In this document: positions 22,567 through 45,064 of the stretch, piece after piece
How positions within the stretch are numbered: the stretch's first letter is position 1
Layout: the number at the start of each line of letters is the position of its first letter
Assembly (NCBI GenBank): GCA_964247055.1
Contig: OZ176059.1
Span: 930,001-994,000, forward strand
Source: Paragordius varius
Taxonomy: Eukaryota; Animalia; Nematomorpha
DNA length: 64,000 nt
Direction: 5' to 3'
Notes under the pieces: generated by a model
Seen by the model: the letters and a program-made list of their open reading frames with translations, nothing else
The model's database searches: none
What the model was told of the DNA's origin: nothing
Program-made: the position numbers and the translations under genes

Positions 22567-22632
<66 letters not shown>

Positions 22633-25052
22633 TTGCATATATAGCGTAGTTTGTGTTTGGGATATACGTAAAATGTTACATAAAAAAACAACTATTACAT
22701 CAAACGCATCATCATTGTATGGAAAAGCGAATCGTAACAAGTCTCATCACTCCAGTAATTATAGTCCAAAGGTTGGCGGCCTTAAAAATACAAAGGAGGA
22801 ATTGGTAGAACCGTTAATATCTATTCCACATAAGGGAACAGTACATAGTGCACAATGGGACAATAATGAAACACCCCAAACTACTGCGGGCAAACATATT
22901 TTAACCGTGTGCTCAGATAATTACATATATGTTTGGAATGTTTTCAACACAAGCTTAACATCTTACGACAGGGCAGTAAGAAAATATGAAATAAATCAAG
23001 ATTTAGTTGATGTATTTGACAATCATCAAACGTGGAATAATCATGCAAATAGTAATAGCCAAAACAAAAACAATAGTATCAAGAAAAAACGAGGACGAAA
23101 AAATAAGTTAAGCCAATCTAAATTGTTTGACTTGACAGCCACTAAAAAGATGACCGATACTTATAGTGATATAGATGATAATTTGCTAAATTATTACGAG
23201 AATGAACCACCATCTAATGAATTTGATTCACCTAATGAGCTACAACAATCAAATTCACCCGAATCATACGAATTGTTGAGTGCTATTTCGTAAGTTTTTT
23301 TTTATTACAGTCATGTATCCTTTATTTTATCATAAATTTATTTTCTTTCGTTAAATGGGTATATATATTTGTTAAAGAATGGAAAAAAACAAGAGCTCTA
23401 TGGTATTCAACAATATTATATTCATCAAAAAAGTGTAACAATTACCATAGAACTTTTGTTTTTTCCATTCTTTAACAAATATTTATACCCATTTAACGAA
23501 AAAATAAATTTTTGATAAAATAAAGCATACATGACTGTTCTTTTTTTTACAGTAAAATCAAATTTTACAGAGCTAAAGGCGTAAAAATTCAAAAAAGACA
23601 ACCATAATTTTTTATATAAAATTATAATTTTTAAATATATAATTGAATGTGTTACCAGTTTACAAAATTATTTCTTATTATCTAGCAACGTATAACGATA
23701 AGTTTATATTTAAAAAATTAAGATTTAGAAAGTATGGTGTTACCTTGTGTTAAAAATATTTATTTCTGGTTTTTACGTTATATTATACATAACTTCTAAT
23801 TTTTACTAATAGATAAATGTTAGAGGAAAAAGTTTTTGGAAACAAAGGGCCCTCATTATATATTTGCAGATAATGTGGAGATATATAAGCTAACATTATC
23901 ATTTTGATATATATATATATATATATATATTAATATTTTACTTAAATCATATAAAATTTACGTTTTAAATTGGTTTTAAATAGTTTCAAAAGTATATAGT
24001 CAAATAATAACACAGATTCGGAATTTAAAGTTTTTTTTATTATCTATACATTAAATTTTTATTTTATACTATTTTTTTTATTTTCCATCACTTGATTAAC
24101 ACCTTTAAAAGTTTTTTGACTGGTTATTTTTTTACAAATGACGACTGGTGAGATTTAACCCAACTTATGATAATGGTTTGTAATCACCTAGTAATAAAAT
24201 GCCACTTTTATAATCATGATTAAATCGATTAAAACAGACTGTTTTTTATCTAATGTAATATTTGGATAATATACCATTTACAATTAAAATTTACCCTTGA
24301 ACAATTCAAATTCACTCTCGACCATTTAAAATTCACCCTCGAACAATTCAAATTTACCCTAAAAATAAATTATGTATTTTCGGGAAAATATAACTTATCA
24401 TTAATATGAAATATATTTTTACTATATAGTGTATCATTTTTTTAGCATTACATGAATTTTAAACAGAATTTCATGATTTTAAAAATATTATAAAATAAAG
24501 GTAATTTTTAATTTTAAACACATTTAATTTATTTTAGGGGGAATTTGAATTGTTCGAGGGTAAATGAGAATTGTTCAAGGGTGAATTTGAATGCTTCAAG
24601 GGTAAATTCAAATTGTTCAAGAGTGAATTTAAACAGTAAATGGTATATTACAAGACTTGATTCATCCCAACAATTTTTATTGGTATGCGTATTTTGATTA
24701 TTTTTTAAGCGTAATGGTATAGTAGGTAGGGCGTCGGACTCTTACATTGCGTGTCAGAGTTCGAACCCCGAAACTAAGGAATTTTTTTCATTATCACTAT
24801 CAGCCCTGGGCAGGTAGGCGAGTGTTAAAGCAGCCTTTACATGTCCGGATTCAATTTAAGTTTCCTTACCCTTTAATATAAAAAAGGAACTCTAAACTAA
24901 ACATTTTTTATTTTGATTATTTTTTTATTTATCTTTTTTAGTCATGATAATAATACGGGACGTTGGTTAACAACCTTTAAGGGTGTTTGGTGTCCAAATT
25001 CTTCCAATCTATTTGCCATTGGTAGTATGCAATACCCTAGACGAGTAGATAC

Positions 25053-25086
<34 letters not shown>

Positions 25087-25343
25087 AATATATATACATA
25101 TATATATTTTACTATAAAACAATATTCCGATATGGTACAACGAAAAACTTTGTAAATTAAGAAATAAAATAAGTTAAAAATTAACATTTAACAAAAAAAT
25201 TAAAGTAGATATTTATTTTATTCAAATTCGTTTTATAAGTCAAACTTTAGTTAAATATCTCATTTTTGGATAAGATTGATATTTTTACGCATGAACGATT
25301 GGTTGGGTTGTTTTTTTATTTTTTGATTAATTGTATTTTATAA

Positions 25344-25395
<52 letters not shown>

Positions 25396-26353
25396 ATTGA
25401 AATATTTTCTGCCGGAGTTGATGGAAAGTTTAAAAACAAAAACTCTGCCCATGGTAACTTTACAAATTGCATATTATTATATTATGTTTTATTTGATTTT
25501 TAAATCAACAAAAATACCATTTAAAAGAATGAAATACGGCTTAAAAAATATGTTTCACAAATTATTCACATCCATTATTAATATTTTGTGTAATTTTAAA
25601 TTATCTATCTTATTATGTGATTGAAAAAAACATATAAAAAAATACATGAAAACCTATATTGGTAAAATCTTTAGAATCATGACCCCCTTCCCTTTTTTCA
25701 AAAAAATATCATTTTTTCTCATACAAAAAATGTTTAAAATATATATAGATTCATTTACAATAGAAATTAAAATTATAAGGACTAAACTTAATTGAATGGC
25801 GCGTTAAGAAATAGAGATGTATGGTAATTTATGTTACAGTAAAAACTGAAATTATACGGACAAAACCTAATAATATAAAGACAAATATTTTTTAAAAAGA
25901 CAACCATACTTTTAGATTTTTTTCAATATATCTCATTGTTTTTAATGGCAAAGTCTGAAATAGAGAAATATAGTACTAACATAATCAATTCTATATTTTA
26001 CTAACTAAATAGCTTATATGAGAAAAATTAAGGTTTTTTAAAAAGAATGGTTGTAGATAAAAATGTTTATCTTTATATTTTTACGTTTTTTCCTTATTCA
26101 ATTTTTACTCTGTATATTTCGCCATTATTGTAATCACAAAAATTAGATAGAAAAACGTTAAAAATGTCACTTTATATAAAAAAATCGATTACTTATATTT
26201 TATCTCATGTTAGGTCGACTACATCATACATTTCGATCCAATTTGTTGAATTCCATTACATCTGTCAATGTTTTTCATCCAAAACTTCCCTTATTAGCGG
26301 GTGGGAATTCTAGCGGACGAGTTTTTATTTTTTCGCCTCCAATGTCATCATGA
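14438..26353 (+). CDS. WDR76: WD repeat-containing protein 76 (Cmr1/DDB2-related), 13 exons, ~776 aa
   Basis: Exons 14438-14533, 14557-14621, 14655-14775, 15095-15352, 16895-17010, 17945-18122, 18789-19085, 20805-20953, 22159-22263, 22645-23289, 24942-25044, 25396-25453, 26214-26353. All junctions are GT-AG and phase-consistent (2331 nt). Family motifs: NYELQRQKNIEEKLNYLKSLGI, RRSNRLRRK, VPERIYSMCWYP...VGDKNGHIGLW, FSPANPNQLFSGSYDGSVR, HDNNTGRWLTTFKGVW, GSMQYPRRIEIF, FHPKLPLLAGGNSSGRVFIF. Confidence 0.9.
15384..15898. mobile_element. Foldback MITE family B (21-bp unit TTCAAGGACCAACTTGAAATG), copy 1
   Basis: Starts TATACCATTTG and ends CAAATGGTATA. The right arm has ~7-8 tandem 21-mers (15715-15880). 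The internal sequence is homologous to 57155-57720. Confidence 0.75.
16011..16222. mobile_element. Hairpin MITE (family D), second copy at 57951-58105
   Basis: Long inverted arms (GCTTATTTCACA...TTTGCAACACAGTA / TACTGTGTTACAAA...TGTGAAATAAGC). Both copies share the tail AAGCAACCATT.AATGCCTA. Confidence 0.7.
17029..17301. mobile_element. Foldback MITE family A (21-bp unit TTCACCCTCGAACAATTCAAA), copy A1
   Basis: TATACCATTTACAGTTCAAATTCACCC...AATTTGAACTGTAAACGGTATA flanking the conserved ~200-bp AT-rich core. Confidence 0.85.
17663..17886. mobile_element. Foldback MITE family A, copy A2, embedded in a (TA)n tract
   Basis: Same TIRs, with (TA)~22 on both sides (17623-17666 and 17882-17926). 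Confidence 0.85.
19350..19581. mobile_element. Foldback MITE family A, copy A3 (diverged, core reversed)
   Basis: TATATCATTTACAGTTCACATTCATCC...TAAATTGTAAATGGTATA. Confidence 0.75.
20125..20616. mobile_element. Two adjacent family A MITEs (A4 20125-~20366 with truncated right arm; A5 20367-20616)
   Basis: Two TATACCATTTACAATTCAAA starts (20125, 20367) and one complete right end, AACTGTAAATGGTATA, at 20616. Confidence 0.8.
20981..21510. mobile_element. Foldback MITE family A, copy A6, left arm expanded to ~15 units
   Basis: TIR termini are intact. The 21-bp array at 20990-21312 explains the spurious ORFs 20959-21315, 21008-21253 and 21075-21278. Confidence 0.85.
22284..22567. mobile_element. 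Foldback MITE family A, copy A7, right end lost into (TA)n
   Basis: Left TIR and core are intact. The right-arm units run directly into the TA tract 22568-22631. Confidence 0.8.
22568..22631. repeat. (TA)n microsatellite (representative; others near 1203, 3968, 17623, 17882, 23908, 25052, 25350, 31989, 45494, 51464, 58815)
   Basis: Directly visible dinucleotide runs. Confidence 0.95.
23307..23538. mobile_element. ~230-bp near-perfect palindrome (MITE with (T)ACAGT termini)
   Basis: ACAGTCATGTATCCTTTATTTTATC...TTCGTTAAATGGGTATA...AAGAATGGAAAAAA pairs with TTTTTCCATTCTT...TATACCCATTTAACGAA...GATAAAATAAAGCATACATGACTGT. Arms are ~100 bp. Confidence 0.8.
24270..24647. mobile_element. Foldback MITE family A, copy A8 (~4 units left, ~5 right)
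   Basis: Both TIR termini are present and both arms are multimeric. Confidence 0.85.
24709..24860 (+). mobile_element. tRNA-derived SINE-like element / tRNA pseudogene (Lys-CTT-like head)
   Basis: Pol III A-box-like TGGTATAGTAGG and B-box GAGTTCGAACCC. GGTAGGGCGTCGGACTCTTA resembles tRNA-Lys(CTT), but the acceptor and anticodon stems do not pair. A relatively GC-rich body follows. Confidence 0.6.
25835..26114. mobile_element. Tc1/mariner-type MITE (family C), best copy; relatives near 16290-16585, 27420-27500, 27990-28090, 28470-28540, 41650-41930, 47070-47364, 47670-47740, 48055-48130, 50570-50640
   Basis: TA|CAGTAAAAA(C/T)TGAAATTATACGGACAAAA...AAAAGACAACCATACTTT arms of ~85 bp, inverted at the other end. 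TA+CAGT termini are typical of Tc1/mariner. Confidence 0.7.
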
Positions 26354-26453: not shown

Positions 26454-26724
26454 TATACCATTTACACATCAAATTCACCCTCGAACAATGTAAATTCACC
26501 CTCGAATTCTTCTCCCCAATATAAATTATCTGGTTTTTAAAATTAAAAATACCTGTATTTTTATATATTTTTAAATGAAATTTTGTTTAAAATTATACGA
26601 AAAATCAATATACTAAGCCATAAAGATATATTTTATATTAATAATGAATTATATTAGCTCGGAAACACATAATTTTTTAGGGTAATTTTGAATTGTAAGG
26701 GTTTTTTGAATTTTAAATGGTATA
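26454..26724. mobile_element. Foldback MITE family A, copy A9, just 3' of WDR76
   Basis: TATACCATTTACACATCAAATTCACCC...TTTTAAATGGTATA, core reversed. Confidence 0.8.
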
Positions 26725-29138
26725 TATAAGTGCATACTCCCATAATGTAATTTTTTTAAATGGATTTCCATTTTTCCGATTTTAAATAATGTTTTATTTA
26801 TATTATCCTACTTTTTGGATATTTATGAGCCATGAGCCAAAAAAATGATACAAAAAATTAATTAAGTATTTCTACCACAATAATAATAGATATTATATAC
26901 TATTAAATAAATTTTAATATTAAAACAAAAGTAGATTCTTAATTTTATTTTTGAAAAGATCATACGGATAATGTAGCAATTTTTTCCCATAATTAAGTTT
27001 TTGTGAAAAAAGTCTCATCTCCTAAAAAGTTATTGTTTGATATCATTGAAATAAAGTATGTTTTAGGAATAAAACTGAGTCCAATATCGGATATAAAAAT
27101 CAATATTAATATAAAATCCATTCGATCAATTAGTTTAGTATTATTATAAAATATTTGTATCAAAAAGGAACCCAGGGTAAAATTAAATGGTTTAATTATT
27201 CGAGCATAATAAAATAAAATGCAATTAAAATTGAAAATACAGACAAAATGTAAAAACATAAAACAAATATATTTTTTCTAAAACCCACTACACATTTTTA
27301 AACCTTAATTTTTACCACATAAAAACTATATAATTACAATTAATAATTAAGAGTTTTCTTTATCTATTGTATTGCAATCTAAAATTTCAAGCACTATTTA
27401 ATCAATCAAGTTTTATGAAAAATATGGTTGTCTTTAAAAAAATATTTGTCATTTAATTTTTACGAATTATCTGTATAATTTTAATTTTTACTGTATGTGG
27501 TATAATTTTGAATGTCAAAAAAATACTTTTTCATGAAATGACTATTTGTATAAATTTCACGCATTCTTAAACAACATGTAGGCAATGTTTGTATATTTAG
27601 TCAAGGACTCTGCTTAAGGGGTAGAGGGCTAAAGAACATTTTAATTTTAAAATATTTCTCCGTAATTGGGACTTATAAACTGTATATACATATATGCGAT
27701 AGTTGAATGAGATTTATTTGTTTACCAAATATGTTTCAATATGACACGATTATGTTTTTGATACGTAAATATGAAATTAAAATAATCTATTATAGCTAAT
27801 AAATATAACTGTAAAAATAGAAATACAGTAATGTAATAAACACAATGAAAATTATTTTTGTTTCCAAAGAATGATCTACATCTACAACTTGGTTTTTTTA
27901 TTATAACTTTTATTTATATGCACGAAATAGAGATTTATATCGGTGTTACAATCAGTTGAATATCTTACAATTGCTAGATAGTGGTTTATATAGGAAAATA
28001 CGGTGTAAAATGTATGGTTGTCTTTGAAAAATTATTTATCTTTTGGGTTTTACCTGTTGCCCTATATCTTCAATTTTTACTGTAATATTTATTTCCGCAA
28101 CACATTATAATAAATAAATTAAGTTGTGCATTTTAGTTTATTAATTATTTTGCCTTTGGTCATGTGAATTTTTATATGAAGCGATGCGTATTATCATCCA
28201 AATTATAAAGCAACGGCTCTAATATTTTCACAGGTAATATTTTTATAGTTTAGTTTGAAACTATCATATACTAGTTTACATAACATTGATTTTGGGTTAT
28301 ATATTAATACTTTTATGTTGATGTCATAACAAAATTTTTGATAATCGCCTATTAAGTGCACATTATTAATTTTAAATGCTTATCAGCGCAATCATTTCAA
28401 TACTCTAACGTTTGTTATTCCATATTAGCTTTCCTTGTTCAGTTGTGGGTGATTATACTTAGTAAAAATTAAAAGTAAACAGACAAAACGTAAAAACTAA
28501 CAGGCAAACATTTTTTTCCAAAGACAACCATACTTTTAAAATCTTATTTTTTTTAATAAATCTCATCTGCAAAATGGTTAATAGAGTTATAATTTGTTAA
28601 TTAAGCTACTCTACATGTTTGGAGATTGCATATTTTGTTAGAAACAGAAATTCCTTTGTAAAATTTTATAAGCGACCCTCATATAGGCTGGTTCGGCAAT
28701 GCTTTCAATCAGATGTGTCCCCACGTGGCCCTCAGAAATATTATGTGCCGCCCGCGAAAAATTTGAACAATTATCAGATAAATACAAAATTTTATAATTT
28801 TCAAAAGCATGCTTTTTAAAAATCTTGGTATAATTGATATATATCTCTTAAACAATTCTTAATAAACTAGCAAAAATTGATAAAATAAAAATATTATTTA
28901 TTAAAATTGTAATTTTTACACAAAAGCAGTCCCCCGGATTTTATTTAGTCAAAATCGGCACGCTAAGCCATTTGTCTTAGAAACCCTCATGTATAAACAT
29001 ATCCTAATAGTAACACCACAATACCATTAAGATTTTATATAATCATGATATAATAAAACTATATTGCATTAAATCATATTTTATGTTTTAAAATTTTTTG
29101 ATTGTTTAACGCATAATTTTTTGACAATATTTGTACAG

Positions 29139-31988
29139 GATAACAAAAATTAAAAAATCAACTTATTGGGTAATCAATCCATCGCATGAAACAAATGTTC
29201 ATTTAGGCATATCTAAGGTCTTTCCTAATGATATCTTGGATATTTATGTGTGTCCCGTTTGACACTTGTCGGAAAAAGGGTATATTATTTAGTTTTTTTC
29301 AGTCATGCGAACGCAAAATTATAAAAATAGTAATAAATTCATTTTTCAGATGTTAGCAAAAATGCAAAAAAGAATATTTTAAATGCAAATAAAATGGGCG
29401 GAGAAATGAAAATGATGACAAATAGTGTTGATGAGAGGAGCAACGTAAAAAAGGATAACCATGAAAGTTTTCCAATTATACCATCATCATCAGGTGGTCC
29501 CCAACAACCTGATCTAACCTCACTAACGCAAACTCTTTTAATGAATAATAAAGGTTATAAACATATTAACATATTAACACTTGATAATGTTTTCAAAAAT
29601 ACAGAGCTGAATTGGCTGTTAAAATATATGTATTAAGATTATTATGGTGTTTGTTCTTTGTCACAAGAATTTAATTTTATATTATACAGTAAAAATTGAA
29701 ATTACACACACAAAACGAAACAACAAGCCAAATGTTTTTTTCATTCACGCTTGATTTATTTAAAGTGCATTTAGAGATGTAATTGCAACACAATAAATTA
29801 TATATTTTATGATTGTAATTAAATAATGTATATATATATATATATTAATTTAAAAAAAACCATGTGTAACTAACATTTACGATTTTTTATCTTCCATTAA
29901 CGACGTTTTAATTTAAATTAATTACTTTTATCTTTTTCAAAATTTCCGCGGTAAAACTTAAAAGTCAACTATAACTAATTTCATTCGAATCATCAAAGAT
30001 AATTAGTCATGAATATTCTCAAAAACATAATTTTTAATATGGAATAAATTCTATTTTCTTCATATAATCCAAAAAATTTTGCTAAAACGGTTTTGTATAT
30101 GAGATTTAAATTTTGTGTTCAGAAAATGTAAATATGGCCCCAATTCAGCAATATAAACCAACGGGCGGTCCACAAACTACTGCAGCGAGCAGTGAATACG
30201 AATACATTTACGAATATGAAGCCGTACCCAACGCAAAAGGACCTAACGCATTTCAAGGTTTGCTTTAGTGTTACATACAGTAAAAATGATATTCGTATAA
30301 AGCAAAACGTAAATACCAAAAGACTATACTAATGTTATTTTTATACTGTATTTTTTTATATTGATATTTTTTAGGGTTGCCAAAAAAAACGGAAATTAAA
30401 TTGATTAAAATTAAATTATATATTTACGATTGTAATATACTAGAAAAAAACGATTAAATATATTATTTTCTAATATTAGCTTCTCTGTTGTAAATGAATA
30501 TAAAAAAACCATTTTTTACATGTTGCACTTCGATTCAAATTGGGGTATCTAAATACCCTGTATATTCAAGTTGTTATTTTTTAAAACTACTGAAAGAAAC
30601 GGCACCAATTTAATTTTATGCCTCTATTTTTATTAAAATTATATAAATAAGCCGAAATATCTAAATAAAATTTATTTTTGAAAAAAAAGTTCTATATTAA
30701 ACTACTTCGACGCCATTTTTATTTTACAACATATTTCCAAAATATCATGTATATTTAATTTCAAACATAAAATTTAAGCAAATTTTTTATTTAAATCACA
30801 TCTAACAATAAAAGAAACAGCAAAATTGGTTTAATTAATGTTATTTTTAAATTTAGCTAAATCAAACATGTCATGTTGACTAATTTTATACGTTTGAGGT
30901 TTCACCTCAAAATAAGTATTTTTAAATGCATTACTTTTATATCTCGGTTCATTAATGTTTATAATTACAAACTTTCGCCATCGTTTCCATTCCTATCATA
31001 TATTTTGAAGTATTTAATTTTAAACAGGTCTGGGGTATCCAAATACCCCAATTCGAATCGAAGGACTGAAATGAATGTGTTGTATCCAAGTTTTAATTGT
31101 TAAAAACCTCAATATATGTATGATATAAAATATAGTTTATAGATTTCATTTGGTATATAGGTGTCACCGAATATGAATACGAATATGAATATTTACCCGA
31201 ATATGAATATCAAAGTATTTTATTATATTTTGTATATATTCATTAGCAACTCTTTTAAGTTGTGAGTAAAACACATATTTTGGTAGCAATTTTATTTCTA
31301 AATAATCTTGGCAGTCTATAATTTTACCCCATTATATAATTTAGCGTTGTTTATTTTACTGTATTAAATTCTAATACATTCATAAGGGATATGCTAGAAA
31401 ATTACATTACTAATACATATTTTTAATCTATAATCAAAAATGGCCCACATTTTGTAATAAAGTGTTAAAATTTTCATATTTTGCGGTTATTTTTATATTT
31501 TATGTATTATAATTTAATATATTTCAGTAGCCAATGTATTATTTCGACAACATTAACATTTTTTAGGCTTTATTTTCTATGTTGTGTTGGTTATAAATAA
31601 ACGCCCTTATTTAAAAAAATAAGAATAATTATAAAAATGGCGAGTTTTTCATTAAATGTTTCCCAATACCATATATATCAATGAAAATTATTATTGGTGA
31701 ATAGCATGATAAAAACGAAAAAATTATAACTTCAAGCCAATTATTTTTCTCTTTGCTGTGTATATGCTATTATATTTTTTAAAAAATGAAATTTTGTTTA
31801 AAATTTAAAATAATACTGAAAAAATAATAAATTATGCCATAAAGATATATTTCATATTGATAATGAGTTATATTAATTCAAAAAACTCATAATATATTTT
31901 CAGGGTGAATTTCAATTGTTCAAGGGTTTTTGAATTGTTCGAGGGTGATTTGAATTGTTTAAGGGTGAATTTGAACTGTAAATGGTAT

Positions 31989-32019
<31 letters not shown>

Positions 32020-32071
32020 CGACGAAGATCCATTATGTTATGAATACGAGTATGAGTATGACACAGCATAA
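29139..32071 (+). CDS. Uncharacterised small protein (~165-185 aa) with three (Glu-Tyr)n blocks; candidate secreted sulfotyrosine-rich protein
   Basis: Phase-consistent GT-AG exons 29350-29553, 30123-30257, 31161-31214 and 32019-32071(TAA) encode DVSKNAKK...SSSGGPQQPDLTSLTQTLLMNNK-ENVNMAPIQQYKPTGGPQTTAASSEYEYIYEYEAVPNAKGPNAFQ-GVTEYEYEYEYLPEYEYQ-NDEDPLCYEYEYEYDTA*. The candidate N-terminal exons 29139-29169 and 29207-29279 (ITKIKKSTYW-AYLRSFLMISWIFMCVPFDTCRKK; in-frame ATG 29228) are less certain. Confidence 0.72.
30526..31096. mobile_element. Non-autonomous element with palindromic subterminal inverted repeats (family E); copies also at 42605-43050, ~49670-50175, 53530-54074
   Basis: Left TTCGATTCAAATTGGGGTATCTAAATACC is the inverse of right GGTATCCAAATACCCCAATTCGAATCGAA. 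All copies share the core and a ~45-bp one-sided tail ending GTATCCAAGTGTTAA or a variant. Confidence 0.75.
31770..31988. mobile_element. Foldback MITE family A, copy A10 (left arm missing)
   Basis: Reversed core plus ~4 units ending GAACTGTAAATGGTAT, followed by (TA)n and the last acceptor of the EY gene. Confidence 0.75.
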
Positions 32072-33714
32072 CTCATCCATTATATTTTGCTTTTTTAGTT
32101 GAATGAGTTGTTTAACTACAAATATTTTTTTCCATATATATTTTTTAACTTATATTACGTACGATAAATAAATATAATTATTTCGTTATTAAAAGTGTAT
32201 ATGTATTTTTTACTAAAGATTATCATTGATAAAGTACCCACCTAATAGATTTTCTAAAATACAAAGCTAAGACTTCCTATTATAAATAATAATAGATGAT
32301 TGGCAAAAACACTTTTTCCTTAGACTTCGTCTATATATTATATAAACAGATCATTTAATAAAGTAATATTTAAGTATTTTTCAATACAGCTGGTGTTATT
32401 ACAAGCTTTCAGCGCCTTAAAAAAGAGGATTTTGGAATAAAGTTCTGGCTAAATCTCTCACATCATTTAAATAAATTTAATTATATCTGGTAAAAATGGG
32501 GAGAAACTCAATAACCCCTATCATATTTGACATTCATCAATAGATAAAATAATCTGATAATTTAGTTTTGCTTTAAAATTTGCGCTGTAAGGCATAAATT
32601 AATGCAAAATAGTTTTTTACGTGCAAGGAAATTTGAATAAAAAGAGACATTAGATAATTGTAACATAAATGATTAAACATCTGGAAAAAAAAGGTAAATG
32701 AAAATTTTAAGGCGGTCCAAAATATGTTGTAAAAAATTAATTTTGATTCGTATGTAGAAATGTAAAACGCTGAGACGAATTTCGAATGTCCTGAGTTAAG
32801 CCGCCCTCTTTGTGGAAGGAGTTTTATAAATAGCAATATCAACTAAAATGTGTTTTAAGGGTTCAAGAAAAAACGTGTAAGTTATTTCTGGTTGAATAAT
32901 GCATATTTTTTATTAAGCAATACGCTGAACATAGAGACGGTCACAATTTTGAATTAATGTTTGTATTTAACCAATCCTCTCGTAAAATGACATTTTTGGC
33001 AAAAAAAAACAAGTTTATATAATTTTTGGCAATTTTAACCCACTGTTAAAGAGATGATATAAAATTCTTAGTGATTTTATCAGTACCTAACACAAAAGCA
33101 AAAATCATAGTCCAGCTCTTTTATAGGCCGCTTGGTATGGCTCTACCTCTGTAAAATGCGCCACTAGAAGAAAATATTTAGAAACACATAAGAGCAGATT
33201 TAAAATTATTACCCTATACGGGCAAAAATTTTAGTCAAAATCTTTTCTAAAATCGTGAAAATGGTCTTTCTGTTAAATACCCACCATGAATTAATAGTCT
33301 GGCTTGTCAGCGACTATCAGTCTATTATTATATTATATGGATTCTAAAATGGCTATTATGCTTCATAAAGGCAATAGTCAAAATGGCCCATTAAATACGC
33401 AAAGATAAAAAAATAAACAGCTTTAAAGCCACTTGTTCAATAATGTATAAAATATTTCCCACAAGTGCTTATTCTATGGCTAGGGTTTCACTTGACGTTA
33501 CAAAGCTCGACATATGAAAATAACGTGACTAAAAAGCAATTGTTAGGAAATTTTTTGAGAACATATGGTTTAAATATTAATTTTAGTTATTTCGCATTTA
33601 AAAATTAGTTGAGTGTTTTTAAGAAATTAACCTGTGAGTAGAATTCCAACCTATGTATAATACGCTTCTATTTTATTGATCACTAATTGTCGACCAAGTC
33701 CACAGGGTATAGAT

Positions 33715-35071
33715 CAGTGGTACTCACCTTTAAAAATTTGAAGGGCCAAATAAAATATATTTTTTTTCGAGGGCCATGAACCTTATAATGGGAAGTATTC
33801 CATAGCTATTTGACACATATGCATATATTTATGCTCTAAATAAGCAAAATGAATTTTTTGCAGATCGCATTTAAATCTAGCTAAAAACTAGTTTTGCACC
33901 ATTTAGTTTAAAAAATTAAGAATTTTAATAATAATATTTATTTTGATATCCAATAATTTTTGACAAATTTGGTTTCGCTACATGACAGGCCAGTTTAAGC
34001 GATTTCTATATGTATTCTTGACATACTTCATTAGTGAATATGCCGCACGTGTAAGTTGAGGAACTTGAGCAAATTAAAATCATTATTAAAATATACGAAT
34101 TTTTCAATGATATGCGCCTGATAAAATCCGAAATGCCTAAATTGCTTATTAATGGATATATCCATAAGCCATGGATTTTCAACGAGTTTTAAGCAATTTT
34201 TAATATTTCTTTATTCTTGAAATGTGAATTTCATCTCATCAGATAAAAATGTTAAATGATTGTCTATTATTAAAATCTCCGCGGTAAATTCCATATTTTC
34301 TATATGAATCGTTTTAAGTGTTGGAAAATTTCTGGGAGAAAGCTATGGACATGATAGATTTTTCTTTTTAGGATAATTCCTTATTTTTATATTTCGTTTC
34401 TCTCCTCATGATTTTCTGGTGATGGATTATAAATTGTCTTAATTTGTATTTTTTTATAATTATGTTGTACTTACATATATGGCAGGTAACAACATTTTTA
34501 TTTAAAACCACAAAGATTTTTTCTTCCCATTCTTTTTTAAAGAACCGATTTTCATCGGATAATTTACGTTTTTTAGTATTAGATGTCATCCTTTGAATTT
34601 ATGTTTAAATATTATGTAAATTTTTTCAAAAAAATAAACTAATTTGAATAATCAAAAAAAGGTCGAAATTTAATTATGTTGGTTTGAATATTTTATGGGA
34701 GAGTTATAAAAAATAAGGTAGGATAACAATGAAAAGAATATGTATATGCAAGTTTGGGTGAAAGGCTTGCTTAAATACAAAAAGGAATGCAATTAAAATT
34801 TCAAAATAGAAAAGAAAATATACAGAAACAAAAACAACGTATACCAAAATTTTGAAATCATTTTAATGTAGGGAAATTATTCTACATTTCAAATTGGGTA
34901 AATAATAAAAATAAAGAAATAAATTAATATTAATTAAGTGAAAATTAGTTTATATGTATTTTAAAAATTCATAAATAAAAAAATAATTTAAGTATCAATA
35001 TGGTCATTGGGCAATTTTAAAGCACTTTTAGGGCCGCATGCGGCCCGCGGGCCGCGGTTTGAGTACCACTG
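33715..35071 (-). mobile_element. Internally deleted hAT-Buster/SPIN-type transposon, 1357 bp
   Basis: TIRs CAGTGGTACTCA / TGAGTACCACTG, subterminal GCGGCCCGCGGGCCGC, and a perfect 8-bp TSD GTATAGAT (NNNTANNN) at 33707-33714 and 35072-35079. ORF 34368-34589 (KRKLSDENRFFKKEWEEKIF...VTCHIC) resembles a Buster transposase N-terminal zinc-finger region. Confidence 0.9.
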
Positions 35072-36368
35072 GTATAGATAGTATCAAAACAATTAAGTTA
35101 TGAAAAAAATTACTTTTAACCTCTTAATATATCAAGTATCCAAAATGATTTAACACCACTAATATATATTATATAATTTATTTTATTTTATATATATATA
35201 ATAAAATAAATATCACTAACAAATAAATATAGAATAATATTTAATAATATATATATGTATGGTATTATAAATGAATGAGTCTTTATATTTATATAAATGA
35301 CATATCAAAAAGTTGATGATTTGATTTTCGTAAAATTATAACAATTATTATTTATGAAACAAATTAACAACTATCAATTGGATATTTTTTGTTAAATTTA
35401 TGAATTTTAAAAAAAATCATGAAAAGTATAATATTTCTGTTAGTGTAAAAGCATACAAACACATGACGTTGACATATGGCATTTGAAATAAAAAACCAGT
35501 CTTAACTTGTATACTAACAGTTAAAACCTAACTATATTAATGTTAAATTCAATGGTTAAGGACAAAGTTTAAATATGAGTTGAATGGATAAAAATTTTTG
35601 AGGATGAGTATAAAGGAATTGTTTTATATAAATGAAAAAAACTTACAATAAATAATAGCACTTAAGTGTTTAATAATAGCCATGACTGAATTTAACTAAA
35701 ATATATTTGTAATTTTTTATAAATTTATATATAATTTAGTCAATAAATGAAAATTATGTATTTGATATATGCGCACACATTCATCATTTGACCAGAAAAA
35801 TTTTATTCAGATTATATTATATGGGCATTGTTAATCTATTTATTTATAATAATATAAACCTGGTCTTCTTTTTTATTTCTTTACACAAAAATATATATAA
35901 AAGTAAATAATTAATAACTTAAAAAAATTTTAAAATTATATTTTGGTAGGTCAAATGTCCATTATTTTAGGATATCGACGCGAAACATAATAAAAAATAT
36001 AAAACACTGTCATATAAGCTAGATATAGATTAAAAGAAACGATCACAAATATGTTTATGTATAAAATATCACCTTGGTTTAATTTTTATATATATAGAAA
36101 TAGCTGAATAGATTTTATATAAATAATGCACTTATGTTGGTTAGGGGTGGCTGGTATTCTAAAGCACACAAGATTTAAAAAAAGCTAATATAAGTTTTTG
36201 TGGAAAAATTGTTGGGAAGGTATTTTTTCTTGTGTTGTTTGGTTCTAACTTTGGAATATGTTTTAGTATGTTAAATGCCTGGAAACGATAAAATTTCACA
36301 ATAAATAGCAATGATTAGATAGATCCCATCAAATACTGTATTATTTTGATTTTTATGGTAAATTCCTA

Positions 36369-39300
36369 TCAAATTTCTTTGTTGGTTGGTGTAGCAGCAG
36401 TATATATTGGTTCAGCTTCACCATAATATGGTTTTACCCCCATGGAATAGTTTAAAACTTTTAGCATTGGGGCAATCTCACCAGCTTTTTCCATCTATTC
36501 ATATATATATTTATATTTATAGCGACACATTGGATAAAGTAATTTAACATTAAAAACAGTCGGACAAATTTTTGGCATATTTTAAGTATAAAATAGTCTA
36601 TAAAAAGAATATTACGCTCAATTAGATTTTTGTGAAAATTTAAAATAATGATATGTACTACGATAAAACCAAGCAAATATCCACAAACACATTTGTAATT
36701 AAAAACAATAAAAAGCTCTTTCCGTGTTTCAAAATTTTAAAACTATTAAACAAGCATCAATTAAACACATTTGTTAATTATGCCTAGATTTCACTTTTTT
36801 TAAACGACTCACAAACGGGCCTGATAATAAATTAATTCGGGCTATATTCTTCAAAATTCATAGTTAATTTACTTTTATTATATAATAAACACACTGTTTA
36901 AGATAATTTATGTAATGTTATACTATTTACTAAAATTCACAATTTATATAACACATACAATGTCTTTTGGCGTATTTGGATCTGTTGCCCAGCTATCAAG
37001 CCCGCGGTAGTTTATTGGTTCGATTACTTGATCACTAGACCGTTCTAACCTATAAATTAAATTTTTTAGCAAAAATTAGCAAATTAAACATAATGTTAAT
37101 TTAAAAACTAAAATAGAGTTATGATCAAAAAACTAATAGAGTTTATGATTTAAAAAACTAAAATCGAGTTAGGATTTAAAACGATTCTTACTTTGAAAGT
37201 GAAACACCATCTGGTTTTCCAACCCATTCATTATGATGCAATACACGCGGGTTCCATGGCACATCTAAAAATTGTAAAATGCTCCGAATCGTTCGATTGG
37301 GTTGTAGAACGAGCTGTTCATAATATACCGGTTTACAAATGGTTGGACCAAGGGTTTGACATATTTGATGCATTTGTTTAATGCCTTTAATTGTAAAAAG
37401 TTACGTTACATGCATGTTATTAAAGGAGGTATATAAAAAGTGTCATGTACCCTTTAATACATAGTAGTTATATAAATAAAAATTTCGACTTTGGATGCTG
37501 CGAATACAAATTAAATTCAAATATTTGTTAAAACAATGTGAAATTTATTAAAATAACACGATATTTGGTCTTATCTTCCGAGTATGTCAAAGCCAACACT
37601 TTAATTGTGCGAAATTTTATCTATAAGCTAAATAAATATATATAAGGAAAGTTAGGCCCATCTTAGTCATATTAAGCAGAGAAAATTTAAAAAAAAAATG
37701 AATTTAACCCTGAAAATGATAGATCTAATATTACCTCTATCCTAAAAATCATTACTTTACTTTTAATTAAAAAGCTCAAAGATGATAACTCATTGAATAT
37801 ATTTAAATGCCAATATACGAAAACAGGCATAAACCATTATTCCACATCCCAAGCGATTGTTTGTAATCATTAATATCCCAACCCGTTATGGTGACTTTGC
37901 GTGTCACCACAGAATGAACTACAGCTCGACCATCTCGAATCATAAAAATGAATTTGGAACGCGGGAAAATGCGATGGACAATATCAGCTGTTTTGAGGAC
38001 AAATGGATCTTTGTTACATAATCGTTTGCGTGCATTCGATAACAAGATAGATTTATAATTATTATTGGTGGTTTCTATGGGGTCAACAGGAGAGTTTACT
38101 AAAAGATTTTGTTCCCCCTTAACAGCTGATTTAAGGGAATTGAGATTACGAATAAAATCTTTGATGTTATTGTTATTGTCGTTGTTAAGCATATCATTTT
38201 CTTTGTTTGCATTTTGTATTGGTGGCTCTAAAATTAGATGATATAAAGCATTACCAGTAATATACCATTTACATTCCAAATTCACCCTCATACAATTTAA
38301 ATTCACCCTCGAACAATTTAAATTCACCCTTGAACAATTCAAATTCACCCTTAATCAATTCAAAGTTACCCTCGAACAATTCAAATTCACCCTCAAACAA
38401 TTCAAATACACCCTTAAACAGAAAATCCACCCTTAAACAATTCAAATACACCCTCGAACAATTCAAATTCACCCTCGAACAATTCAAATTCACCCTCGAA
38501 CAATTCAAATTCACCCTTAAACAATTCAAATTCACCCTCGAACAATTCAACTTCACCATCGAACAATTCAAATTCACCCTCGAACAATTCAAATTCACCC
38601 TTAAACAATTCAAATTCACCCTCGAACAATTCAACTTCACCATCGAACAATTAAAATTCACACTCGAACAATTCAAATTCACCCTTGAACAATTCAAATT
38701 CACTCTTAAACAATTCAAATTTACCCTCGAACAATTCGAATTCACCCTTAAACATTTCAAATTCACCCTTGACCAATTCAAATTCACCCTCGAACAATTA
38801 AAATTCACACTCGAACAATTCAAATTCACAATCGAACAATACAAATTCACCCTCGAACAATTTAAATTCACACTCGAACAATTCAAATTCACCCTCGAAC
38901 AATTTAAATTTACCCTTAAACAATTCAAATTCACCCTAAATATATATTATGTATTTTTATTCTAATATAACTCATCATTAATATGAAATATATTTTTACG
39001 ACATAGTTTATTAATTTTTTTTGCATTATTTTGATTTTAAACAGAATTTTATATTTTAAAAATATTAAAAAATAAATAAAGGTAATTTTTAATGTAGAAA
39101 AACACATAATGTATTTTAGGGTGAATTTAAATTGTTTAAGGGTAAATTTGAACTGAAAATGGTATATATAAAATATTAGCTGTACTAAATTACGGAGCAC
39201 AAGAAGTTAATGAATTTAATTTATATCTATCTAAATGCATTTATCCTAAAAAAATTAGAAAATGTTTTCAGATTGAAAAAACGGAAGTTAGCACATTTTA

Positions 39301-42300
39301 TATAAGAATGATCAGGGGTAAACCAGATTGAGTTACATGGTTTTGGCAATCCCAAAAATGAATAATTTAAAAATGTATACTTAAGTAGCTAAACTTTTAA
39401 GATTTATTTAAATATGATTTACGAGTGTAATATAATACAAATAATTGGCGGCGTTTTACATCGATTAATCTATACGATAATAATTAATAACTTTATCATT
39501 ATCAATAAGAAAAACTCAATTTTTAACAGAACAGCGACGGTTTTAAAAACATTAGGTTTTCCATCCTATGTCGGTATAGAACAGGTAAAATATATTTTTA
39601 CCCTCAAAATATTGAGAAAACATGTTCTAAAATGTGGGATATAAGATATTTTCACCAACTATAATGCCTTTTGCAGTAAGATTTGAATGTATGAAATAAA
39701 ACGTAAGGCGAGGAAAGTTTTACAGAGATTTCCTAATCAAAGTAAAAAATCTGGCTAAGGTGCTTGTCGTTCTAGGGCAAACATTAACGGACACGTCAGT
39801 GATGTATCCATATCCGATTTAAATAAAACCCGTTAAAATCAGAGCTATTTTTAAAATAAGGATCCGGTCTCGTACAATATTGTGGTGGATATGGCAATAT
39901 CGTATGAAAAAATCGCGACAAGTCATTTGCTATCTCAAGATATTAACCACACAGAATCAACCAACCAATGAATAAGTTGTAGAAAAGGACAATAATTCAA
40001 TGCCTACCTCACAGTTAGGTAAAAATATCCCAATTTTTAAAATAAGATTTTAATGAATTTTTATATAGATTTCAAACCTGATAGTATGGAAATGTGTTCT
40101 CTAGGTTATGCTTTTTTCATTCATTTATATTATTTTTTCACCCTGATAATGTATTGGTTATAATTCAATTCTTTTGATTTGATATTAAACATGCAGACAA
40201 GTTTTTGTTACAAATTTACAGATATCGCTGAACGGTTATTTAAAGAAATAATTTTACGAAGTAGTTATAATTAGACTATGTTAAGAAACGGTCTGGAACT
40301 AAACTGTTCTTTTATTAAAATTTTTTTATTAATTTCTTTTTTTAATAACAACCTAACTGAATGTATTTACGCTATGAGTAAGTATACATTGCTACCAAGT
40401 TATTGATTATTGCCAAATAATATATACAACAAAAAGCAGCATTATTGACTTATTTATTTTTTCACTTTTTACTATTATTAGCAGATAATAATTGTTAGCT
40501 GTATAGGCTATTTGGCAATAATTAATAACTTTTAGCAAATATATACTTAAAACTGTATAATTCTCAAATATAGCTTTATATCGTGCATGTTACCAATTTA
40601 AAAGTCTATTCCTTATTTAATACAAAACAATAGATTACGTAAAAAAAAGGCTCACAAAAGATGGTTGTGATTTATGATAAAATGTTAGCCATTTGGTTTA
40701 TAGGTTTTGTCTTTTTATTATGATTTAATTTTTACTCGCTCATTTTAATTTTGTTTTGTCATGTTACCTTGGCAGAACTCAACATTAAAACTAAAATCGC
40801 AATCTATGGAGAAGTTTTATTTACAATATTGTAAAAAGTCGACCCGACTGTAGCAACACACAAACACAATGATAGGATTTACATAATATGGTGGTATCTT
40901 TGTAAAACAATGTTTGCCTTATAGTTTTAGTTTTAGTTATTGTAGTTTTAATTTCAATTTTTACTGTTCATTCTAAACATTTCATTTGTGATAATAAAAT
41001 TCAAATTTTAAATTTATGATATCATACCAAGATTGCCAGGCACAACGTGTCTTTTGTTAAGTCGTGGGCCATTTTTATCATCAGAGTATACATTTTTTGC
41101 TTGGTAGTTTTTCATAGATTTTTCTTCCCCATTAAATCTTACGTAATCATTTGCTTCTTCATAGTGCCCATTTTGATTGAATAAAATGGGGTGGCCCTTC
41201 TTAACATTACCAGTTTCATATTCATTGCCAACATGGTTTAAATTTTGGTTACCATTCAGATTTAGTACATTACTTTCGTAATTATATTTTGCTGGATTCA
41301 TAGAGTTATTGAAATTTTCATCATTGTGAAGTAGGTAGGCATTTTGAGCAGTGGACGGGCCCATAAGGCCACCAAAATCGCCATAATGATTTACATTGCT
41401 AGAATTTATATAATTTTGTCCACCATGTAGTAGTTTGCTATTGCTAATATTGATATTGACATTAACATTAAGCATTGGGGGGGAAGAATGGTTTAGAAAT
41501 GTGTCTTGAACTGAACGTTCCGTTAAAATTGTTAAAATGAAATCGCCGATAGCTGAATCAAGGACCTCATCATCCATCCTGGCTTCTTTTAAACGGTTCC
41601 GTTCTACCTGTAGGTAAGTATTATAAAATTTATAGTAAGGAAAAAGGCAATATTTCCTAATTGAAATTATATGGACAGACAAAATGTAAAAATATTAAGT
41701 TAAAAAAATTTTTTTTAAAAGACTGCTGCTGTACTTTTGTAAATTTTTCTTTTTTAAAAAAATTGCAAATTGTGTAGCAGAGATGTATATTAATAGCACA
41801 ATTAATTATATGTAATTCTGAATTGTAATTAAATATTTATGATAGAAAAATTAAGGTTTAAAAAATTGGTTGAATATTTGTCTCTAGTACTTTACGTTTT
41901 TCCTGTACAAAATTAAGTTTTATTGCATTTGGTTGAGAATTTTTGCATCATGTTTTGACGCTCTACTAAAAATAAATCGATAATAATGGGAAATGGCATA
42001 TATATGCCATCAATATAGCTTATATTTTATATAATGCTCTTCTATAAATACCTGTGTAAAAATGTATACGATACTACAATACATGCAACATATTGCAAAA
42101 TAATTGAGATTTTTAACAATTCCTCATTTAGGGTAGAATTAAGGGGCCGCATTACACTAGGTTTATGTAATTTTTAGCCTTGTTTTAAATTGAATTAATT
42201 TATGATTTTGTTTGTTTTATGTTAACAAAAAAGAAAGTATTTTCATATAGTTTACTGCATTGTCGAACCAAATGTATTATCAATTAAACGAATTTCCAAG

Positions 42301-45064
42301 GCGTGGTACTTCGTTTATATTTGACGACAAAATCTTAAAATTAAAAATTAATATTAGTTAAAAAGTTGTCTCAAATTAAAGGGCTAGTTGGATGGAATAT
42401 ACGGTAATAATAGATTTTTATAAAAAGTAAAGAAATTAAAACTAAAAAAGTATTTTCTAAATATAAATAAATTACAACACATAATATATAAATAAATATA
42501 GTTTAAATTTTTCTTTTAGCCAGACAGTTAAAATGATTGGCGATGCGAATAATATGACAAATTTTATATTTAATTTTATTAAAAATAGGCAATATGTTGA
42601 TTATTACTTCGATTCGAATTAAGGTATCCAAATACCCAATACTAAAAGACTATATTGAAGTTGATATTTTTAATAAACTACTGAAAGAAACGGTAAATTT
42701 ATATTTTCCTTCTACCCTAATAAAAATTTAAATCAGCCAAAATATCTAAATAAAGTTGTTAAAAAAAATTCATATCAAACTGCATCGACGCCATTTTTAT
42801 TTTTTTAATTCTAAAGCTAAAATTCAAGCTAATTTTTTATTTAAATCATATCTAAAATTGATAGAAGAAAAAGTGGTTTATTTTGCATTCTTTTTCAATT
42901 TAGCCGATGAATGTTATATATGTGTAAACTTTTGCCATTTCAATTTTATCCATATTTTTTATAGTTTTTAATTTTAAACAGGCCTGGGGTATCCAACGAA
43001 CCCAATTAGAATCGGGGGACTGATATGAATGTGTTGTATCCAAGTGTTAAAACTCTGAACACATATTTTATAGGCAATACTTTGGTAAAGGGGGTTGGGT
43101 TTATTTTTATACCATTGTTTAGTCGAATATTTAATAACCTAGTTTGTAGCTTAAATTTATCAATTTGGCATATTCTTTTACCTTTAAATTTTTTTTCGGA
43201 TAAAATATCCATGAATTATAATCCACACCTTACAATTAAATTCCCATTATCATTATACATATACATGAAAGTTGATATAATTTATACTTTAAACGAAGTA
43301 TATATTCTAAGGATTAAATTTTTAGAGGGGTGTTTATAGTTTAATGCCTTATGACACCCGTTACTATTCAATAGTCTTACCGTAACGTATAAAAAATAAT
43401 CTATCTTAAATCTTTATCAATAATCATCGAAATTGATCACATACCAAAATATCTTATAGTAAAATGAACTAACCACAATACCTATGAAATCTTTTATCTG
43501 GTGTTATAACTAAATTACGATATACAACAGTGGTACTCACCAAAAAAACTTAAAGGAGCGCAAAAAAACAATTATCTTAACTCAAGGGGCCCATGCACCC
43601 ACCATTATATAATACCGACAAAAAATTCATTTTAAAGTTGTTTAAAACCCTTGCCAGTTATTTATTGTCAAAATAAGGTATATCAAAAAAATTTTTAAAC
43701 GTATATTCAGAGCCCCATAAAAAGAAGTACTTTTAGGACGGCCGCAGTTTGAGTATCACTGAGAATAATATAGCAAGGATGTCCAAAACTTATAATTTCA
43801 CGGGCCCGCATTTTTAACTCTGAAAAACGGCGAACCGCATTTTTTACACGAATAATATAACATTTTATCCAGTTTGCCAAATGAAAAATGGTCCAAAAAA
43901 TATCAATTTTACTAAGATTTTATGAACATATTTTCTGAACTAAAGTATTTCCAAATTTTTCACGTGCAACACAAAGAGTTTCAGAAGGCTGCATGTTAGA
44001 CACTCCTAACTTTGAGTTATTCAAGTTTAAATTTCAAATTTTTAAATGTTAAAAAAAAGTAATACTTTGGAATTTGACCAACTCTTTCGCATAAACAGAA
44101 CGCGTGGAATAACACGCGTTTCCTGACCACACCTCACGTCCGGATGAGCATCTAAAATGGCGCGCATAAGTGTCGTTCCGCTCCGTGGCATTCCGCCCAC
44201 AAAAATGATTGGTATATGTTTTCGAAGTTCATACTTCATACCCTGGGTCTCGATTAAAGCTTTCCGCAAAACTGCCACATTATCTAAGCTAGCTGGTACA
44301 GTATTAACAACAAATGGTTTGTTTTTGTCAACAAAGTTTATATCTTTATTCTTGTTGTCATTATATATTAAATCATTAGGATTATGATTATTATGTATAT
44401 AAGGGGCTTGATTACGCGGGTGAGCGGCATATCTACCAACATCATTTTGCAATAATTTGTTAGCGAGCGATTTTGTAAACGGCTGCGGTAAGTTTTTACT
44501 TTTATTACTGTTGTTGTTAACATATAAATTCATATTATTATTATTATAATTTATGTTGTAATTTTCTTCATCCCATACATCAACATCGTTCCCGCCAACA
44601 TGATTTTCACGGTTATTTTTACGGTTATTCAAAGCTATTGCGTTTGGGTGATGGCGGCCGTTATAACTGGGTAGTCCGGGTCGTCGCCCAAAATTAGCAT
44701 TAGGGTTAGGGTTAGTGTTAGACCATTTCATAGTGAAAAACCACCAAGAGGTTAACCATAAGAGTAAAGTAGCTATAACTAAGTTATATGTCGTTATATT
44801 AAAGTATTTACGTGTTAATAAGTTTGGGCGATATCGACAGGAGGCACTTAGGGGTGCGGACCAACCCCCGACCCCATTATGTAACATGTAAGATGATGAT
44901 TTTATCTTTGTTTGAGTTTTACTATTACCCAATGAACCATTCATGACATAGTTGGGCACAGGCGTTGTAGTTTTTTGCAAATTGTTTGTAAAACCATTGC
45001 TACTATTATTTTCCAAATTATTTTTATCAGGAATGCTTGTTTTCTTTGCTTGATTCGAATCCAT
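36369..45064 (-). CDS. TPST: Protein-tyrosine sulfotransferase (TPST), 6 coding exons, ~793 aa
   Basis: Exons (minus strand) 45064-44066, 41607-41028, 38227-37835, 37384-37192, 37049-36959, 36494-36369, all GT-AG and phase-consistent (2382 nt). Motifs: [98 protein letters not shown]. Signal anchor [20 protein letters not shown]. Confidence 0.93.
38261..39166. mobile_element. Foldback MITE family A, copy A11, left arm expanded to ~31-32 tandem 21-mers
   Basis: TATACCATTTACA at 38261, array to ~38938, conserved core, ~2 right-arm units and GGTATA at 39166. It lies in TPST intron 2 and explains ORFs 38269-38934, 38330-38965 and 38414-38650. Confidence 0.9.
40376..40548. mobile_element. Hairpin MITE family F; copies at 47851-48016, ~50205-50345 and partial ~63795-63910
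   Basis: AAGTATACATTGCTA..AAGTTATT.ATTATTG.CAAA is inverted as TTTGGCAATAATTAATAACTTT.TAGC...TATACTT. Confidence 0.7.
43528..44008. mobile_element. Two adjacent hAT-Buster MITEs (43528-43761 and 43774-~44008) in TPST intron 1
   Basis: CAGTGGTACTCA...TGAGTATCACTG (same termini as the 33715 element) and CAAGGATGTCCAA...TTAGACACTCCT. TSDs not recognisable. Confidence 0.65.

Follow-up and report, generated by a model that had tools for sequence, protein, structure and literature searches.

Tyrosylprotein sulfotransferases (TPSTs) act in the lumen of the trans-Golgi (PMC8869759), on tyrosines that have acidic residues nearby, an acidic or neutral residue at position −1 and no basic residue in the vicinity (PMC6272617). 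Their substrates include the PSGL-1 peptide ATEYEYLDYDFL, which serves as a standard TPST substrate, and the synthetic copolymer poly(Glu6,Ala3,Tyr1) (PMC6272617). Clusters of sulfotyrosines are also known and comprise up to about four sites in a short span (PMC9372746, PMC6272617). In tick madanin, sulfation of two tyrosines raises the activity about 1000-fold (PMC10951654). As for the linkage of a sulfotransferase gene with the gene of its substrate, the one precedent found in the literature is bacterial: in the 5-kb raxX-raxSTAB cluster of Xanthomonas, the gene for a tyrosine-sulfated peptide adjoins the gene for its sulfotransferase (PMC6637879). Here we describe a stretch of 64,000 nt from the genome of the hairworm Paragordius varius (OZ176059.1, positions 930001–994000; assembly of 110.6 Mb in 44 contigs, about 25% G+C), referred to below as the window and numbered from its first nucleotide. 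It contains a candidate gene for a small protein with a Glu-Tyr-rich tail (hereafter the EY gene), located tail-to-tail with a TPST gene.

The EY tail shares some features with each of the described systems. Like the PSGL-1 peptide, it contains Glu-Tyr-Glu-Tyr followed by Leu and Pro (exon C of the EY gene reads EYEYEYEYLPEYEY), and in both cases the context is acidic, free of basic residues, Pro-containing and disordered. However, PSGL-1 has three tyrosines against 14 in the EY tail, there is no homology beyond the low-complexity motif, and PSGL-1 has been proven to be a membrane mucin of type I, whereas the EY product is a predicted protein. Proteins of the tick madanin/hirudin type are likewise small, disordered and acidic parasite proteins, and their activity depends on TPST-made sulfotyrosines; the tick TPST 8w5z, the kind of TPST used in the madanin study, is also the structure that exon 3 of the hairworm TPST matches best. 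Yet these proteins combine one to three sulfotyrosines with a protease-binding segment, hairworms are not blood feeders, and there is no homology. Poly(Glu6,Ala3,Tyr1) has dense Glu-flanked tyrosines and is a generic TPST substrate (PMC6272617), but copolymers of Glu and Tyr are synthetic products of random sequence, with a far lower density of Tyr than the EY tail. Since they are equally good substrates of tyrosine kinases, composition alone does not settle which enzyme would act on such a sequence. The raxX-raxSTAB system, in turn, belongs to bacteria and is organised as an operon-type cluster, which includes a dedicated transporter and a sulfotransferase unrelated to TPST, whereas the EY gene and TPST are eukaryotic genes that show no conserved linkage and, being convergent, have no common promoter.

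A candidate gene with a Glu-Tyr-rich tail

Having read the sequence directly and rebuilt the gene model, we obtained four candidate exons on the forward strand (exons A–D, Table 1) with a total length of 402 nt. All exon borders consist of an AG acceptor and a GT donor, each of the three introns is in phase 1, and a single frame shared by the exons terminates at the TAA codon in exon D. Exon A ends with ...AATAATAAAG/gttata, exon B is delimited as ttttgtgttcag/AAAATG...TTTCAAG/gtttgc, exon C as ggtatatag/GTGTCACC...TATCAAA/gtattt, and exon D extends from tatatattag/ACGACG to GCATAA. The minimal coding sequence (29394–32071) comprises about 133 codons. Exon A specifies a hydrophilic segment rich in Ser, Thr, Pro, Gly and Gln, and its frame is additionally open upstream of ATG 29394, back to an acceptor at 29349/29350. 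Exon B encodes a GGPQ motif followed by EYEYIYEYE and AVPNAKGPNAFQ, and the tail is continued by exons C and D. The product is best explained as an intrinsically disordered protein, the N-terminal half of which is rich in Ser, Thr, Pro, Gly and Gln and carries two GGPQ motifs, one each from exons A and B. Both the in-frame splicing of four exons and the duplicated GGPQ, first proposed in an initial annotation of this DNA, are thus retained in the rebuilt model. An AATAAA hexamer lies 3′ of exon D, at 32167–32172; it carries little weight, because at the local base composition about one per 360 nt would be expected by chance.

Counted exon by exon, Tyr occupies 14 and Glu/Asp 17 of the final 56 positions of the product, as in the initial annotation, and a single residue among them is basic. 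Twelve of the 14 tyrosines are preceded by Glu at −1, and all of them have two to five acidic and no basic residues within ±5. Glu is encoded by GAA 12 times and by GAG twice, Tyr by TAT nine times and by TAC five times. This choice agrees with the known coding sequence of the window (about 1900 codons), in which GAA:GAG is 50:15 and TAT:TAC is 50:20. The units of the EY runs differ from each other either synonymously, at third positions, or by replacement of whole codons (Ile, Leu-Pro), and the third-position variation noticed earlier is confirmed. A neutral hexanucleotide microsatellite, which ought to be a common repeat class decaying at random codon positions, agrees poorly with these differences, with the presence of the hexamer runs at five loci only, and with the TRF match of 66–82% in the period-6 arrays that cover parts of the tail (31169–31210 and 32039–32061).

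The (Glu-Tyr)3-coding pattern GARTAYGARTAYGARTAY has seven matches at five loci in the whole genome, and three of the matches fall at the EY gene. The wider (Asp/Glu-Tyr)3 pattern has ten matches at eight loci, which is not above the reversed-pattern control. A single (Asp/Glu-Tyr)3 run is at chance level; a pair of separate runs together with EYEYIYEYE, all on the same strand within 1.9 kb, is not chance, and the rarity of the hexamer runs means that three of them so arranged need a cause. Among the acidic Tyr-containing loci examined in the genome, the EY tail is the densest. At the DNA level, the likeness among the EY exons (B versus C) is restricted to the EY-coding parts. This suggests an old exon duplication of which the coding part alone was retained, so that the three EY exons look like old duplicates.

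The composition of exons A and B argues further for a real gene. The GC content is 0.37 in exon A and 0.43 in exon B (with a local peak of 0.53) versus 0.21–0.23 in the introns, and the GC islands, which are unique in sequence, coincide exactly with these two proposed exons, the surroundings being AT-rich and filled with repeats. We also calculated a codon log-odds score, contrasting the known coding sequence of the window with its non-coding DNA and using open non-coding segments as the null. Exon A scored +21.8 in the proposed frame and −46 and −29 in the other two, and one of 90 null segments of 53 codons scored as high. For exon B the value was +16.7 (+5.7 and −14.7 in the other frames), reached by two of 173 null segments. 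Both exons thus belong to the top 1–2% of open non-coding frames. Exon B is single-copy in the genome. It was found, identical and together with the start of exon C (0–1 differences), in a second DNA run deposited under another organism label, and therefore the locus is not an assembly artefact. In its unique parts that run is essentially identical to the window, and hence it provides no comparative signal. High read depth at the EY locus falls on the introns. In our assessment, the EY locus probably represents a real, unannotated and lineage-restricted small gene.

The convergent TPST gene and the fit of the tail

The neighbouring gene (45064–36369 on the reverse strand, 8.7 kb) is, beyond reasonable doubt, an intact TPST as judged from its predicted product. 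PF13469 matches three of its exons, and the structures of human TPST1/2 and of tick TPST match at 1e-17 to 1e-27. The 5′-phosphosulfate-binding motif GxPRSGTT is present in exon 1 as GGMPRSGTT; in the same exon, CGQETR, the motif with the catalytic Glu, aligns to CGEETR of human TPST2. The 3′-phosphate-binding motif RDGRxxxHS occurs as RDGRAVVHS, in a segment identical to that of tick TPST 8w5z. The best match is TPST of Gordionus sp., with 72% identity over the conserved core, and the remaining matches come from scattered animal phyla. Residues 133–478 of the Gordionus protein can be followed through the successive exons in the alignment, the borders being GT-AG and internal stops being absent. 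In a whole-genome search, Gordionus TPST matched only these exons, and TPST is therefore single-copy. The conserved binding and catalytic motifs, the PF13469 matches, the unbroken catalytic domain and the lack of a second copy in the genome all uphold the initial identification of this gene.

Exon 1 of TPST encodes an Asn-rich N-terminal extension and a hydrophobic stretch resembling a signal anchor; the latter aligns with the anchor region of Gordionus TPST and may be a type II signal anchor. Including the presumed anchor, about 270 Asn-rich residues precede the catalytic core, compared with about 60 residues in human TPST. In addition, the catalytic domain has a putative long Asn-rich low-complexity insert (41014–41682 and 37835–38348, reverse strand) between ...ILTILTER and RLCNKDPF...; at the equivalent site, the insert of Gordionus TPST is shorter, about 65 residues.

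Each of the 14 tail tyrosines satisfies the published TPST site rules, and the tail resembles the PSGL-1 peptide, which supports its initial description as a TPST-type sequence. Judged by composition, yes, TPST would act on it. We envisage that the EY product enters the secretory pathway and that the single TPST of the animal would sulfate most of the tail tyrosines in the trans-Golgi, with 3′-phosphoadenosine 5′-phosphosulfate as the donor. The outcome would be a secreted or surface-bound polyanionic cluster of sulfotyrosines, in effect a multiplied PSGL-1/madanin-type motif, which might bind basic surfaces of partner proteins. Transcription, splicing, secretion and sulfation of the EY product, as well as any partner, are what we infer from the sequence. 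That the gene is real and its product both secreted and sulfated is a tentative proposition, with the chances against it. If expressed and secreted, the protein would be an extreme case of natural clustered tyrosine sulfation, with 14 tyrosines versus up to about four sites in known clusters. It would also be a ready model substrate for multi-site processivity of TPST, and a candidate for a secreted effector, or for a constituent of a matrix, in a phylum on which hardly any molecular biology exists.

Start of the protein and alternative readings

Since TPST acts in the trans-Golgi lumen, sulfation of the tail turns on secretion, and secretion on how the protein starts. The best start codon is ATG 29394, the context of which includes A at −3 together with G at +4; this codon is also where the composition becomes coding-like. 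Several longer versions can be drawn. A weak candidate 5′ exon (29228–29279) could join exon A via one 70-nt intron or via two micro-introns of 23 and 20 nt. A hydrophobic stretch, MISWIFMCVPF, lies about 120 nt upstream of exon A in a compatible phase and becomes SFLMISWIFMCVPF if a 37-nt intron is used. The initial annotation had opted for a further piece, ITKIKKSTYW, which has no ATG of its own and would require a start codon split as AT/G by a 54-nt intron (29085–29138). Models with one to three tiny 5′ exons are unproven but not absurd. Another candidate tiny intron can be seen at C1:7220851-7226868 (reverse strand), where an exon ...DEDVNNKIKRQVEYEYEYAPVNDDRIHQ with an EYEYEY run may be joined to the preceding open frame by removal of the 24-nt GT-AG segment GTAATACTTATATTTAATTATTAG.

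Three other possibilities for the start or the N-terminus were examined and rejected. The GC island at 28665–28769, which contains a third GPQ and was considered as a first exon, has no usable donor and is part of a dispersed repeat present in 19 or more copies; the whole GC-rich island (28600–28830, 0.53) consists of this repeat, the copies of which are 74–89% identical. The open reading frame (ORF) at 28014 has the strongest hydrophobic start, but it lacks a donor in phase 1 and is located inside a repeated element. N-myristoylation of MGGEMK was also discarded: the PROSITE pattern needs Ser, Thr, Ala, Gly, Cys or Asn at the position occupied here by Lys. Given a real gene, secretion of its product has, as far as the available start models indicate, a little under an even chance.

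A number of observations weigh against a real gene with a secreted, sulfated product. From ATG 29394 onwards the N-terminus is hydrophilic, with no evident signal peptide. The codon score of the candidate 5′ exon is neutral (+0.14), and 626 of 1974 null segments are equal or better. The upstream hydrophobic candidate is without a good −3/−1 cleavage site. In a decoy test, which allowed a path from an upstream ATG through up to three short introns and scored a hydrophobic 12-residue window, 17% of random non-coding anchors of the window gave an equally hydrophobic upstream path. The hydrophobic N-terminus of the initial annotation is not sustained by these data, given its missing start codon, the neutral codon score and the decoys. 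In two of the four donors, position +3 is occupied by T (GTTATA and GTTTGC), although this is no obstacle here, because the homology-fixed border of TPST exon 3 is G/GTTTAT. Three runs under the same species label, guessed rather than recorded to be RNA (19–30 million letters each, with no control gene), yielded no contig on 26600–32500. A phmmer search with exon B against 1.8 billion representative proteins returned a single match, which is a translated tandem repeat and was dismissed as spurious; word-based searches with exon A among proteins of 44–140 and 54–173 aa found no protein with a shared word. Finally, neither an EY run nor an acidic Tyr cluster nor any match to exons A–D is present within ±10 kb at the Gordionus TPST locus. 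For exon B, the ESM Atlas gave no usable match either, and a full-text literature search for EYEYEY retrieved designed peptides and unrelated strings only. The lack of homologues is weak evidence, because the queries were single, short, low-complexity exons, for which sensitivity is low, and because the comparison with another hairworm genome covered its TPST locus only.

These points bear differently on the competing explanations. The locus might not be a gene at all, being instead a degenerate cluster of GAATAY hexamers, split by transposons and situated beside two open GC-richer segments, with splice sites and a common frame arising by coincidence in AT-rich DNA. The missing contigs and homologues fit this explanation, as do the period-6 arrays, the fact that introns 2 and 3 are mostly transposon or minisatellite, and the commonness of AG, GT and AATAAA at the local base composition. 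However, the hexamer runs are rare and do not exceed the reversed-pattern control; the differences between their units are not those of random decay; the GC islands match the proposed exons; and, outside the repeats, exons A and B look coding solely in the frame by which the EY runs are connected. We therefore regard a non-genic origin as unlikely. If the gene is real, its product might still be cytosolic or nuclear, starting at ATG 29394, and the tail would then be out of reach of TPST, which would be irrelevant to it. Such a protein could be a multi-site substrate of tyrosine kinases, a docking scaffold with phosphotyrosines or simply an acidic aromatic disordered region. The context of ATG 29394, the hydrophilic N-terminus and the coding-like composition starting at that codon all agree with a cytosolic or nuclear product, and Glu/Tyr copolymers are also classic generic substrates of tyrosine kinases. 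On the other hand, the frame remains open beyond the ATG up to a good acceptor, with the hydrophobic stretch in a compatible phase further upstream. No spacing of SH2 or ITAM type is evident, YEYI and YEYL being 24 residues apart. Introns exclusively in phase 1 and a mucin-like Ser/Thr/Pro linker may also be commoner in secreted proteins, which would be a weak argument. On balance, a non-secreted product seems rather unlikely, but hardly more so than a secreted and sulfated one; should it be correct, nature would have produced in the tail a kinase substrate similar to poly(Glu,Tyr), likewise an unusual case. Alternatively, the product could be secreted and serve a structural role in the matrix of cuticle, egg-strings or adhesive, where peroxidase would cross-link its tyrosines to di- and trityrosine, with sulfation being incidental or absent. 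The high density of Tyr and the use of tyrosine cross-links in ecdysozoan cuticles are compatible with this role, and C. elegans requires its TPST-1 both to organise the cuticle and to secrete collagen (PMC8869759). Yet cross-linking presupposes secretion just as sulfation does, and known cross-linked matrix proteins are mostly Gly/Tyr- or Pro/Tyr-rich rather than strictly Glu-Tyr. We consider this role highly improbable.

The last alternative is a special case of the secreted and sulfated product, in which the EY gene and TPST form a true enzyme-substrate gene pair, kept adjacent by co-regulation or co-inheritance as an animal counterpart of raxX-raxST. The two stop codons, TAA 32069–32071 and TGA 36369–36371, are 4298 nt apart, which confirms the spacing of 4.3 kb initially reported for these convergent genes. 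The density of the EY tail, the single copy of TPST and the bacterial cluster would all suit such a pair. So would the rarity of (Asp/Glu-Tyr)3 loci: with 5–8 of them in the genome, about 0.001 would be expected at a distance of 5 kb or less from the TPST gene (8.7 kb), an estimate that is nevertheless post hoc, having been derived from a genome-wide scan. Against a pair stand the convergent arrangement without a common promoter, the transposon remnant between the genes and the Gordionus TPST locus with no EY exon within 10 kb. None of the window's other neighbours, that is, its WD-repeat-like, EamA-type and RING-finger genes, has a counterpart within the same ±10 kb of Gordionus TPST, and therefore the order of genes around TPST is generally not conserved. 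Moreover, acidic Tyr clusters occur on other contigs, at C1:4394188 and C2:12833782, with ADYEYEYEEYYVEE and PEDEYDEYDYEYDDE (the latter after a Cys-containing segment), and at C6:4147017, with D/N/Y-rich runs, all in long, coding-looking open frames; TPST substrates thus need not be linked to TPST. These clusters are plausible TPST substrates themselves, dispersed as in other animals. Synteny of the EY exons with TPST, proposed as a test in the initial annotation, was not seen within 10 kb of Gordionus TPST; the position 4.3 kb from TPST is most likely coincidental. A functional pair is very unlikely, and there is correspondingly little chance that a lineage-specific gene kept beside the sole TPST gives rise to a secreted product in which as many as 14 sulfotyrosines fall within 56 residues. 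Among animals, we are aware of no TPST substrate with linkage to TPST; a genuine pair would be the first enzyme-substrate gene pair for tyrosine sulfation in animals, a linkage without precedent there. To our knowledge, 14 sulfotyrosines in 56 residues would also make the tail the densest natural TPST substrate. Such a product would amount to a protein-based, heparin-like polyanion, directed, for example, against protease or immune cascades of the insect host or employed in the worm's own matrix.

Repeats and other genes of the window

The features discussed above are collected in Table 1, together with the repeats that surround the EY exons.

Table 1. Exons, candidate exons and repeats around the EY gene and TPST (positions in the window; a slash marks a splice border)
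Feature	Position	Strand	Remarks
EY upstream piece ITKIKKSTYW of the initial annotation	29139–29169	+	joined by 37-nt GT-AG intron 29170–29206; speculative
EY weak candidate 5′ exon	29228–29279	+	encodes MISWIFMCVPFDTCRKK; phase-1 donor AGG/GTATAT
EY exon A	29394–29553	+	ATG 29394, context AAAATGG; donor AAAG/GTTATA, phase 1; first GGPQ
EY exon B	30123–30257	+	acceptor ttttgtgttcag/, donor CAAG/GTTTGC; phase 1 at both ends
Miniature transposon, 31-nt terminal inverted repeats	30528–31063		occupies most of intron 2
EY exon C	31161–31214	+	54-nt micro-exon encoding VTEYEYEYEYLPEYEYQ; acceptor ggtatatag/, donor CAAA/GTATTT; phase 1 at both ends
Dispersed ~20–21-nt minisatellite, short copy, then (TA)13	31902–32015		directly upstream of exon D acceptor; high repeat depth
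EY exon D	32019–32071	+	encodes DEDPLCYEYEYEYDTA plus stop TAA 32069–32071
Transposon remnant, terminal inverted repeats	33700–35080		between the two stop codons; ZBED/hAT-like ORF 34368–34589 (−)
TPST exon 6	36369–36494	−	contains stop TGA 36369–36371
TPST exon 5	36959–37049	−	alignment with Gordionus TPST
TPST exon 4	37192–37384	−	human TPST2 2.2e-17
TPST exon 3, conserved part	37835–38030	−	RLCNKDPF..., 3′-phosphate-binding motif; donor G/GTTTAT; tick TPST 8w5z 7.7e-27
TPST exon 2, conserved part	41515–41607	−	open frame runs on to 41014 as putative Asn-rich insert
TPST exon 1	44066–45064	−	donor AAA/GTATTA; PF13469 7.7e-16; human TPST2 8.8e-23

The miniature inverted-repeat element in intron 2 has ends with the core GGGGTATC[T/C]AAATACCCC, and related elements are found at 42900–43043 and 49963–50310, so that the family is represented in introns of both the EY gene and TPST. 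In a DNA run, the read depth over 30343–31130 is in the thousands. The 21-nt minisatellite CAAATTCACCCTCGAACAATT forms an array of 31.6 copies in a TPST intron (38277–38937); short copies, often beside (TA)n, occur at 31902–31979, 20959–21315 and 26470–26500, and the copy number in the DNA run is very high. The transposon remnant between the two genes is bounded by CAGTGGTACTCA and TGAGTACCACTG and includes a GC-rich palindrome at 35035–35060. Scans for tRNA genes and Rfam families over 20000–50000 gave no match, and the GC islands of the spacer are not accounted for thereby.

Three further genes were recognized in the window: a WD-repeat-like gene (22541–26353, forward strand), which ends at 26353, upstream of the EY gene; a gene for an EamA-type transporter (6683–8203, reverse strand; PF00892, 1e-26); and a RING-finger gene (54757–55227, forward strand). 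Elsewhere in the genome, an incidental EYEYEY run was found in what appears to be an ordinary enzyme, a glycosyltransferase-like open frame of 175 residues at C3:11629807-11635824 (reverse strand) that ends with ...SWFREEYEYEYKNLLQKV.

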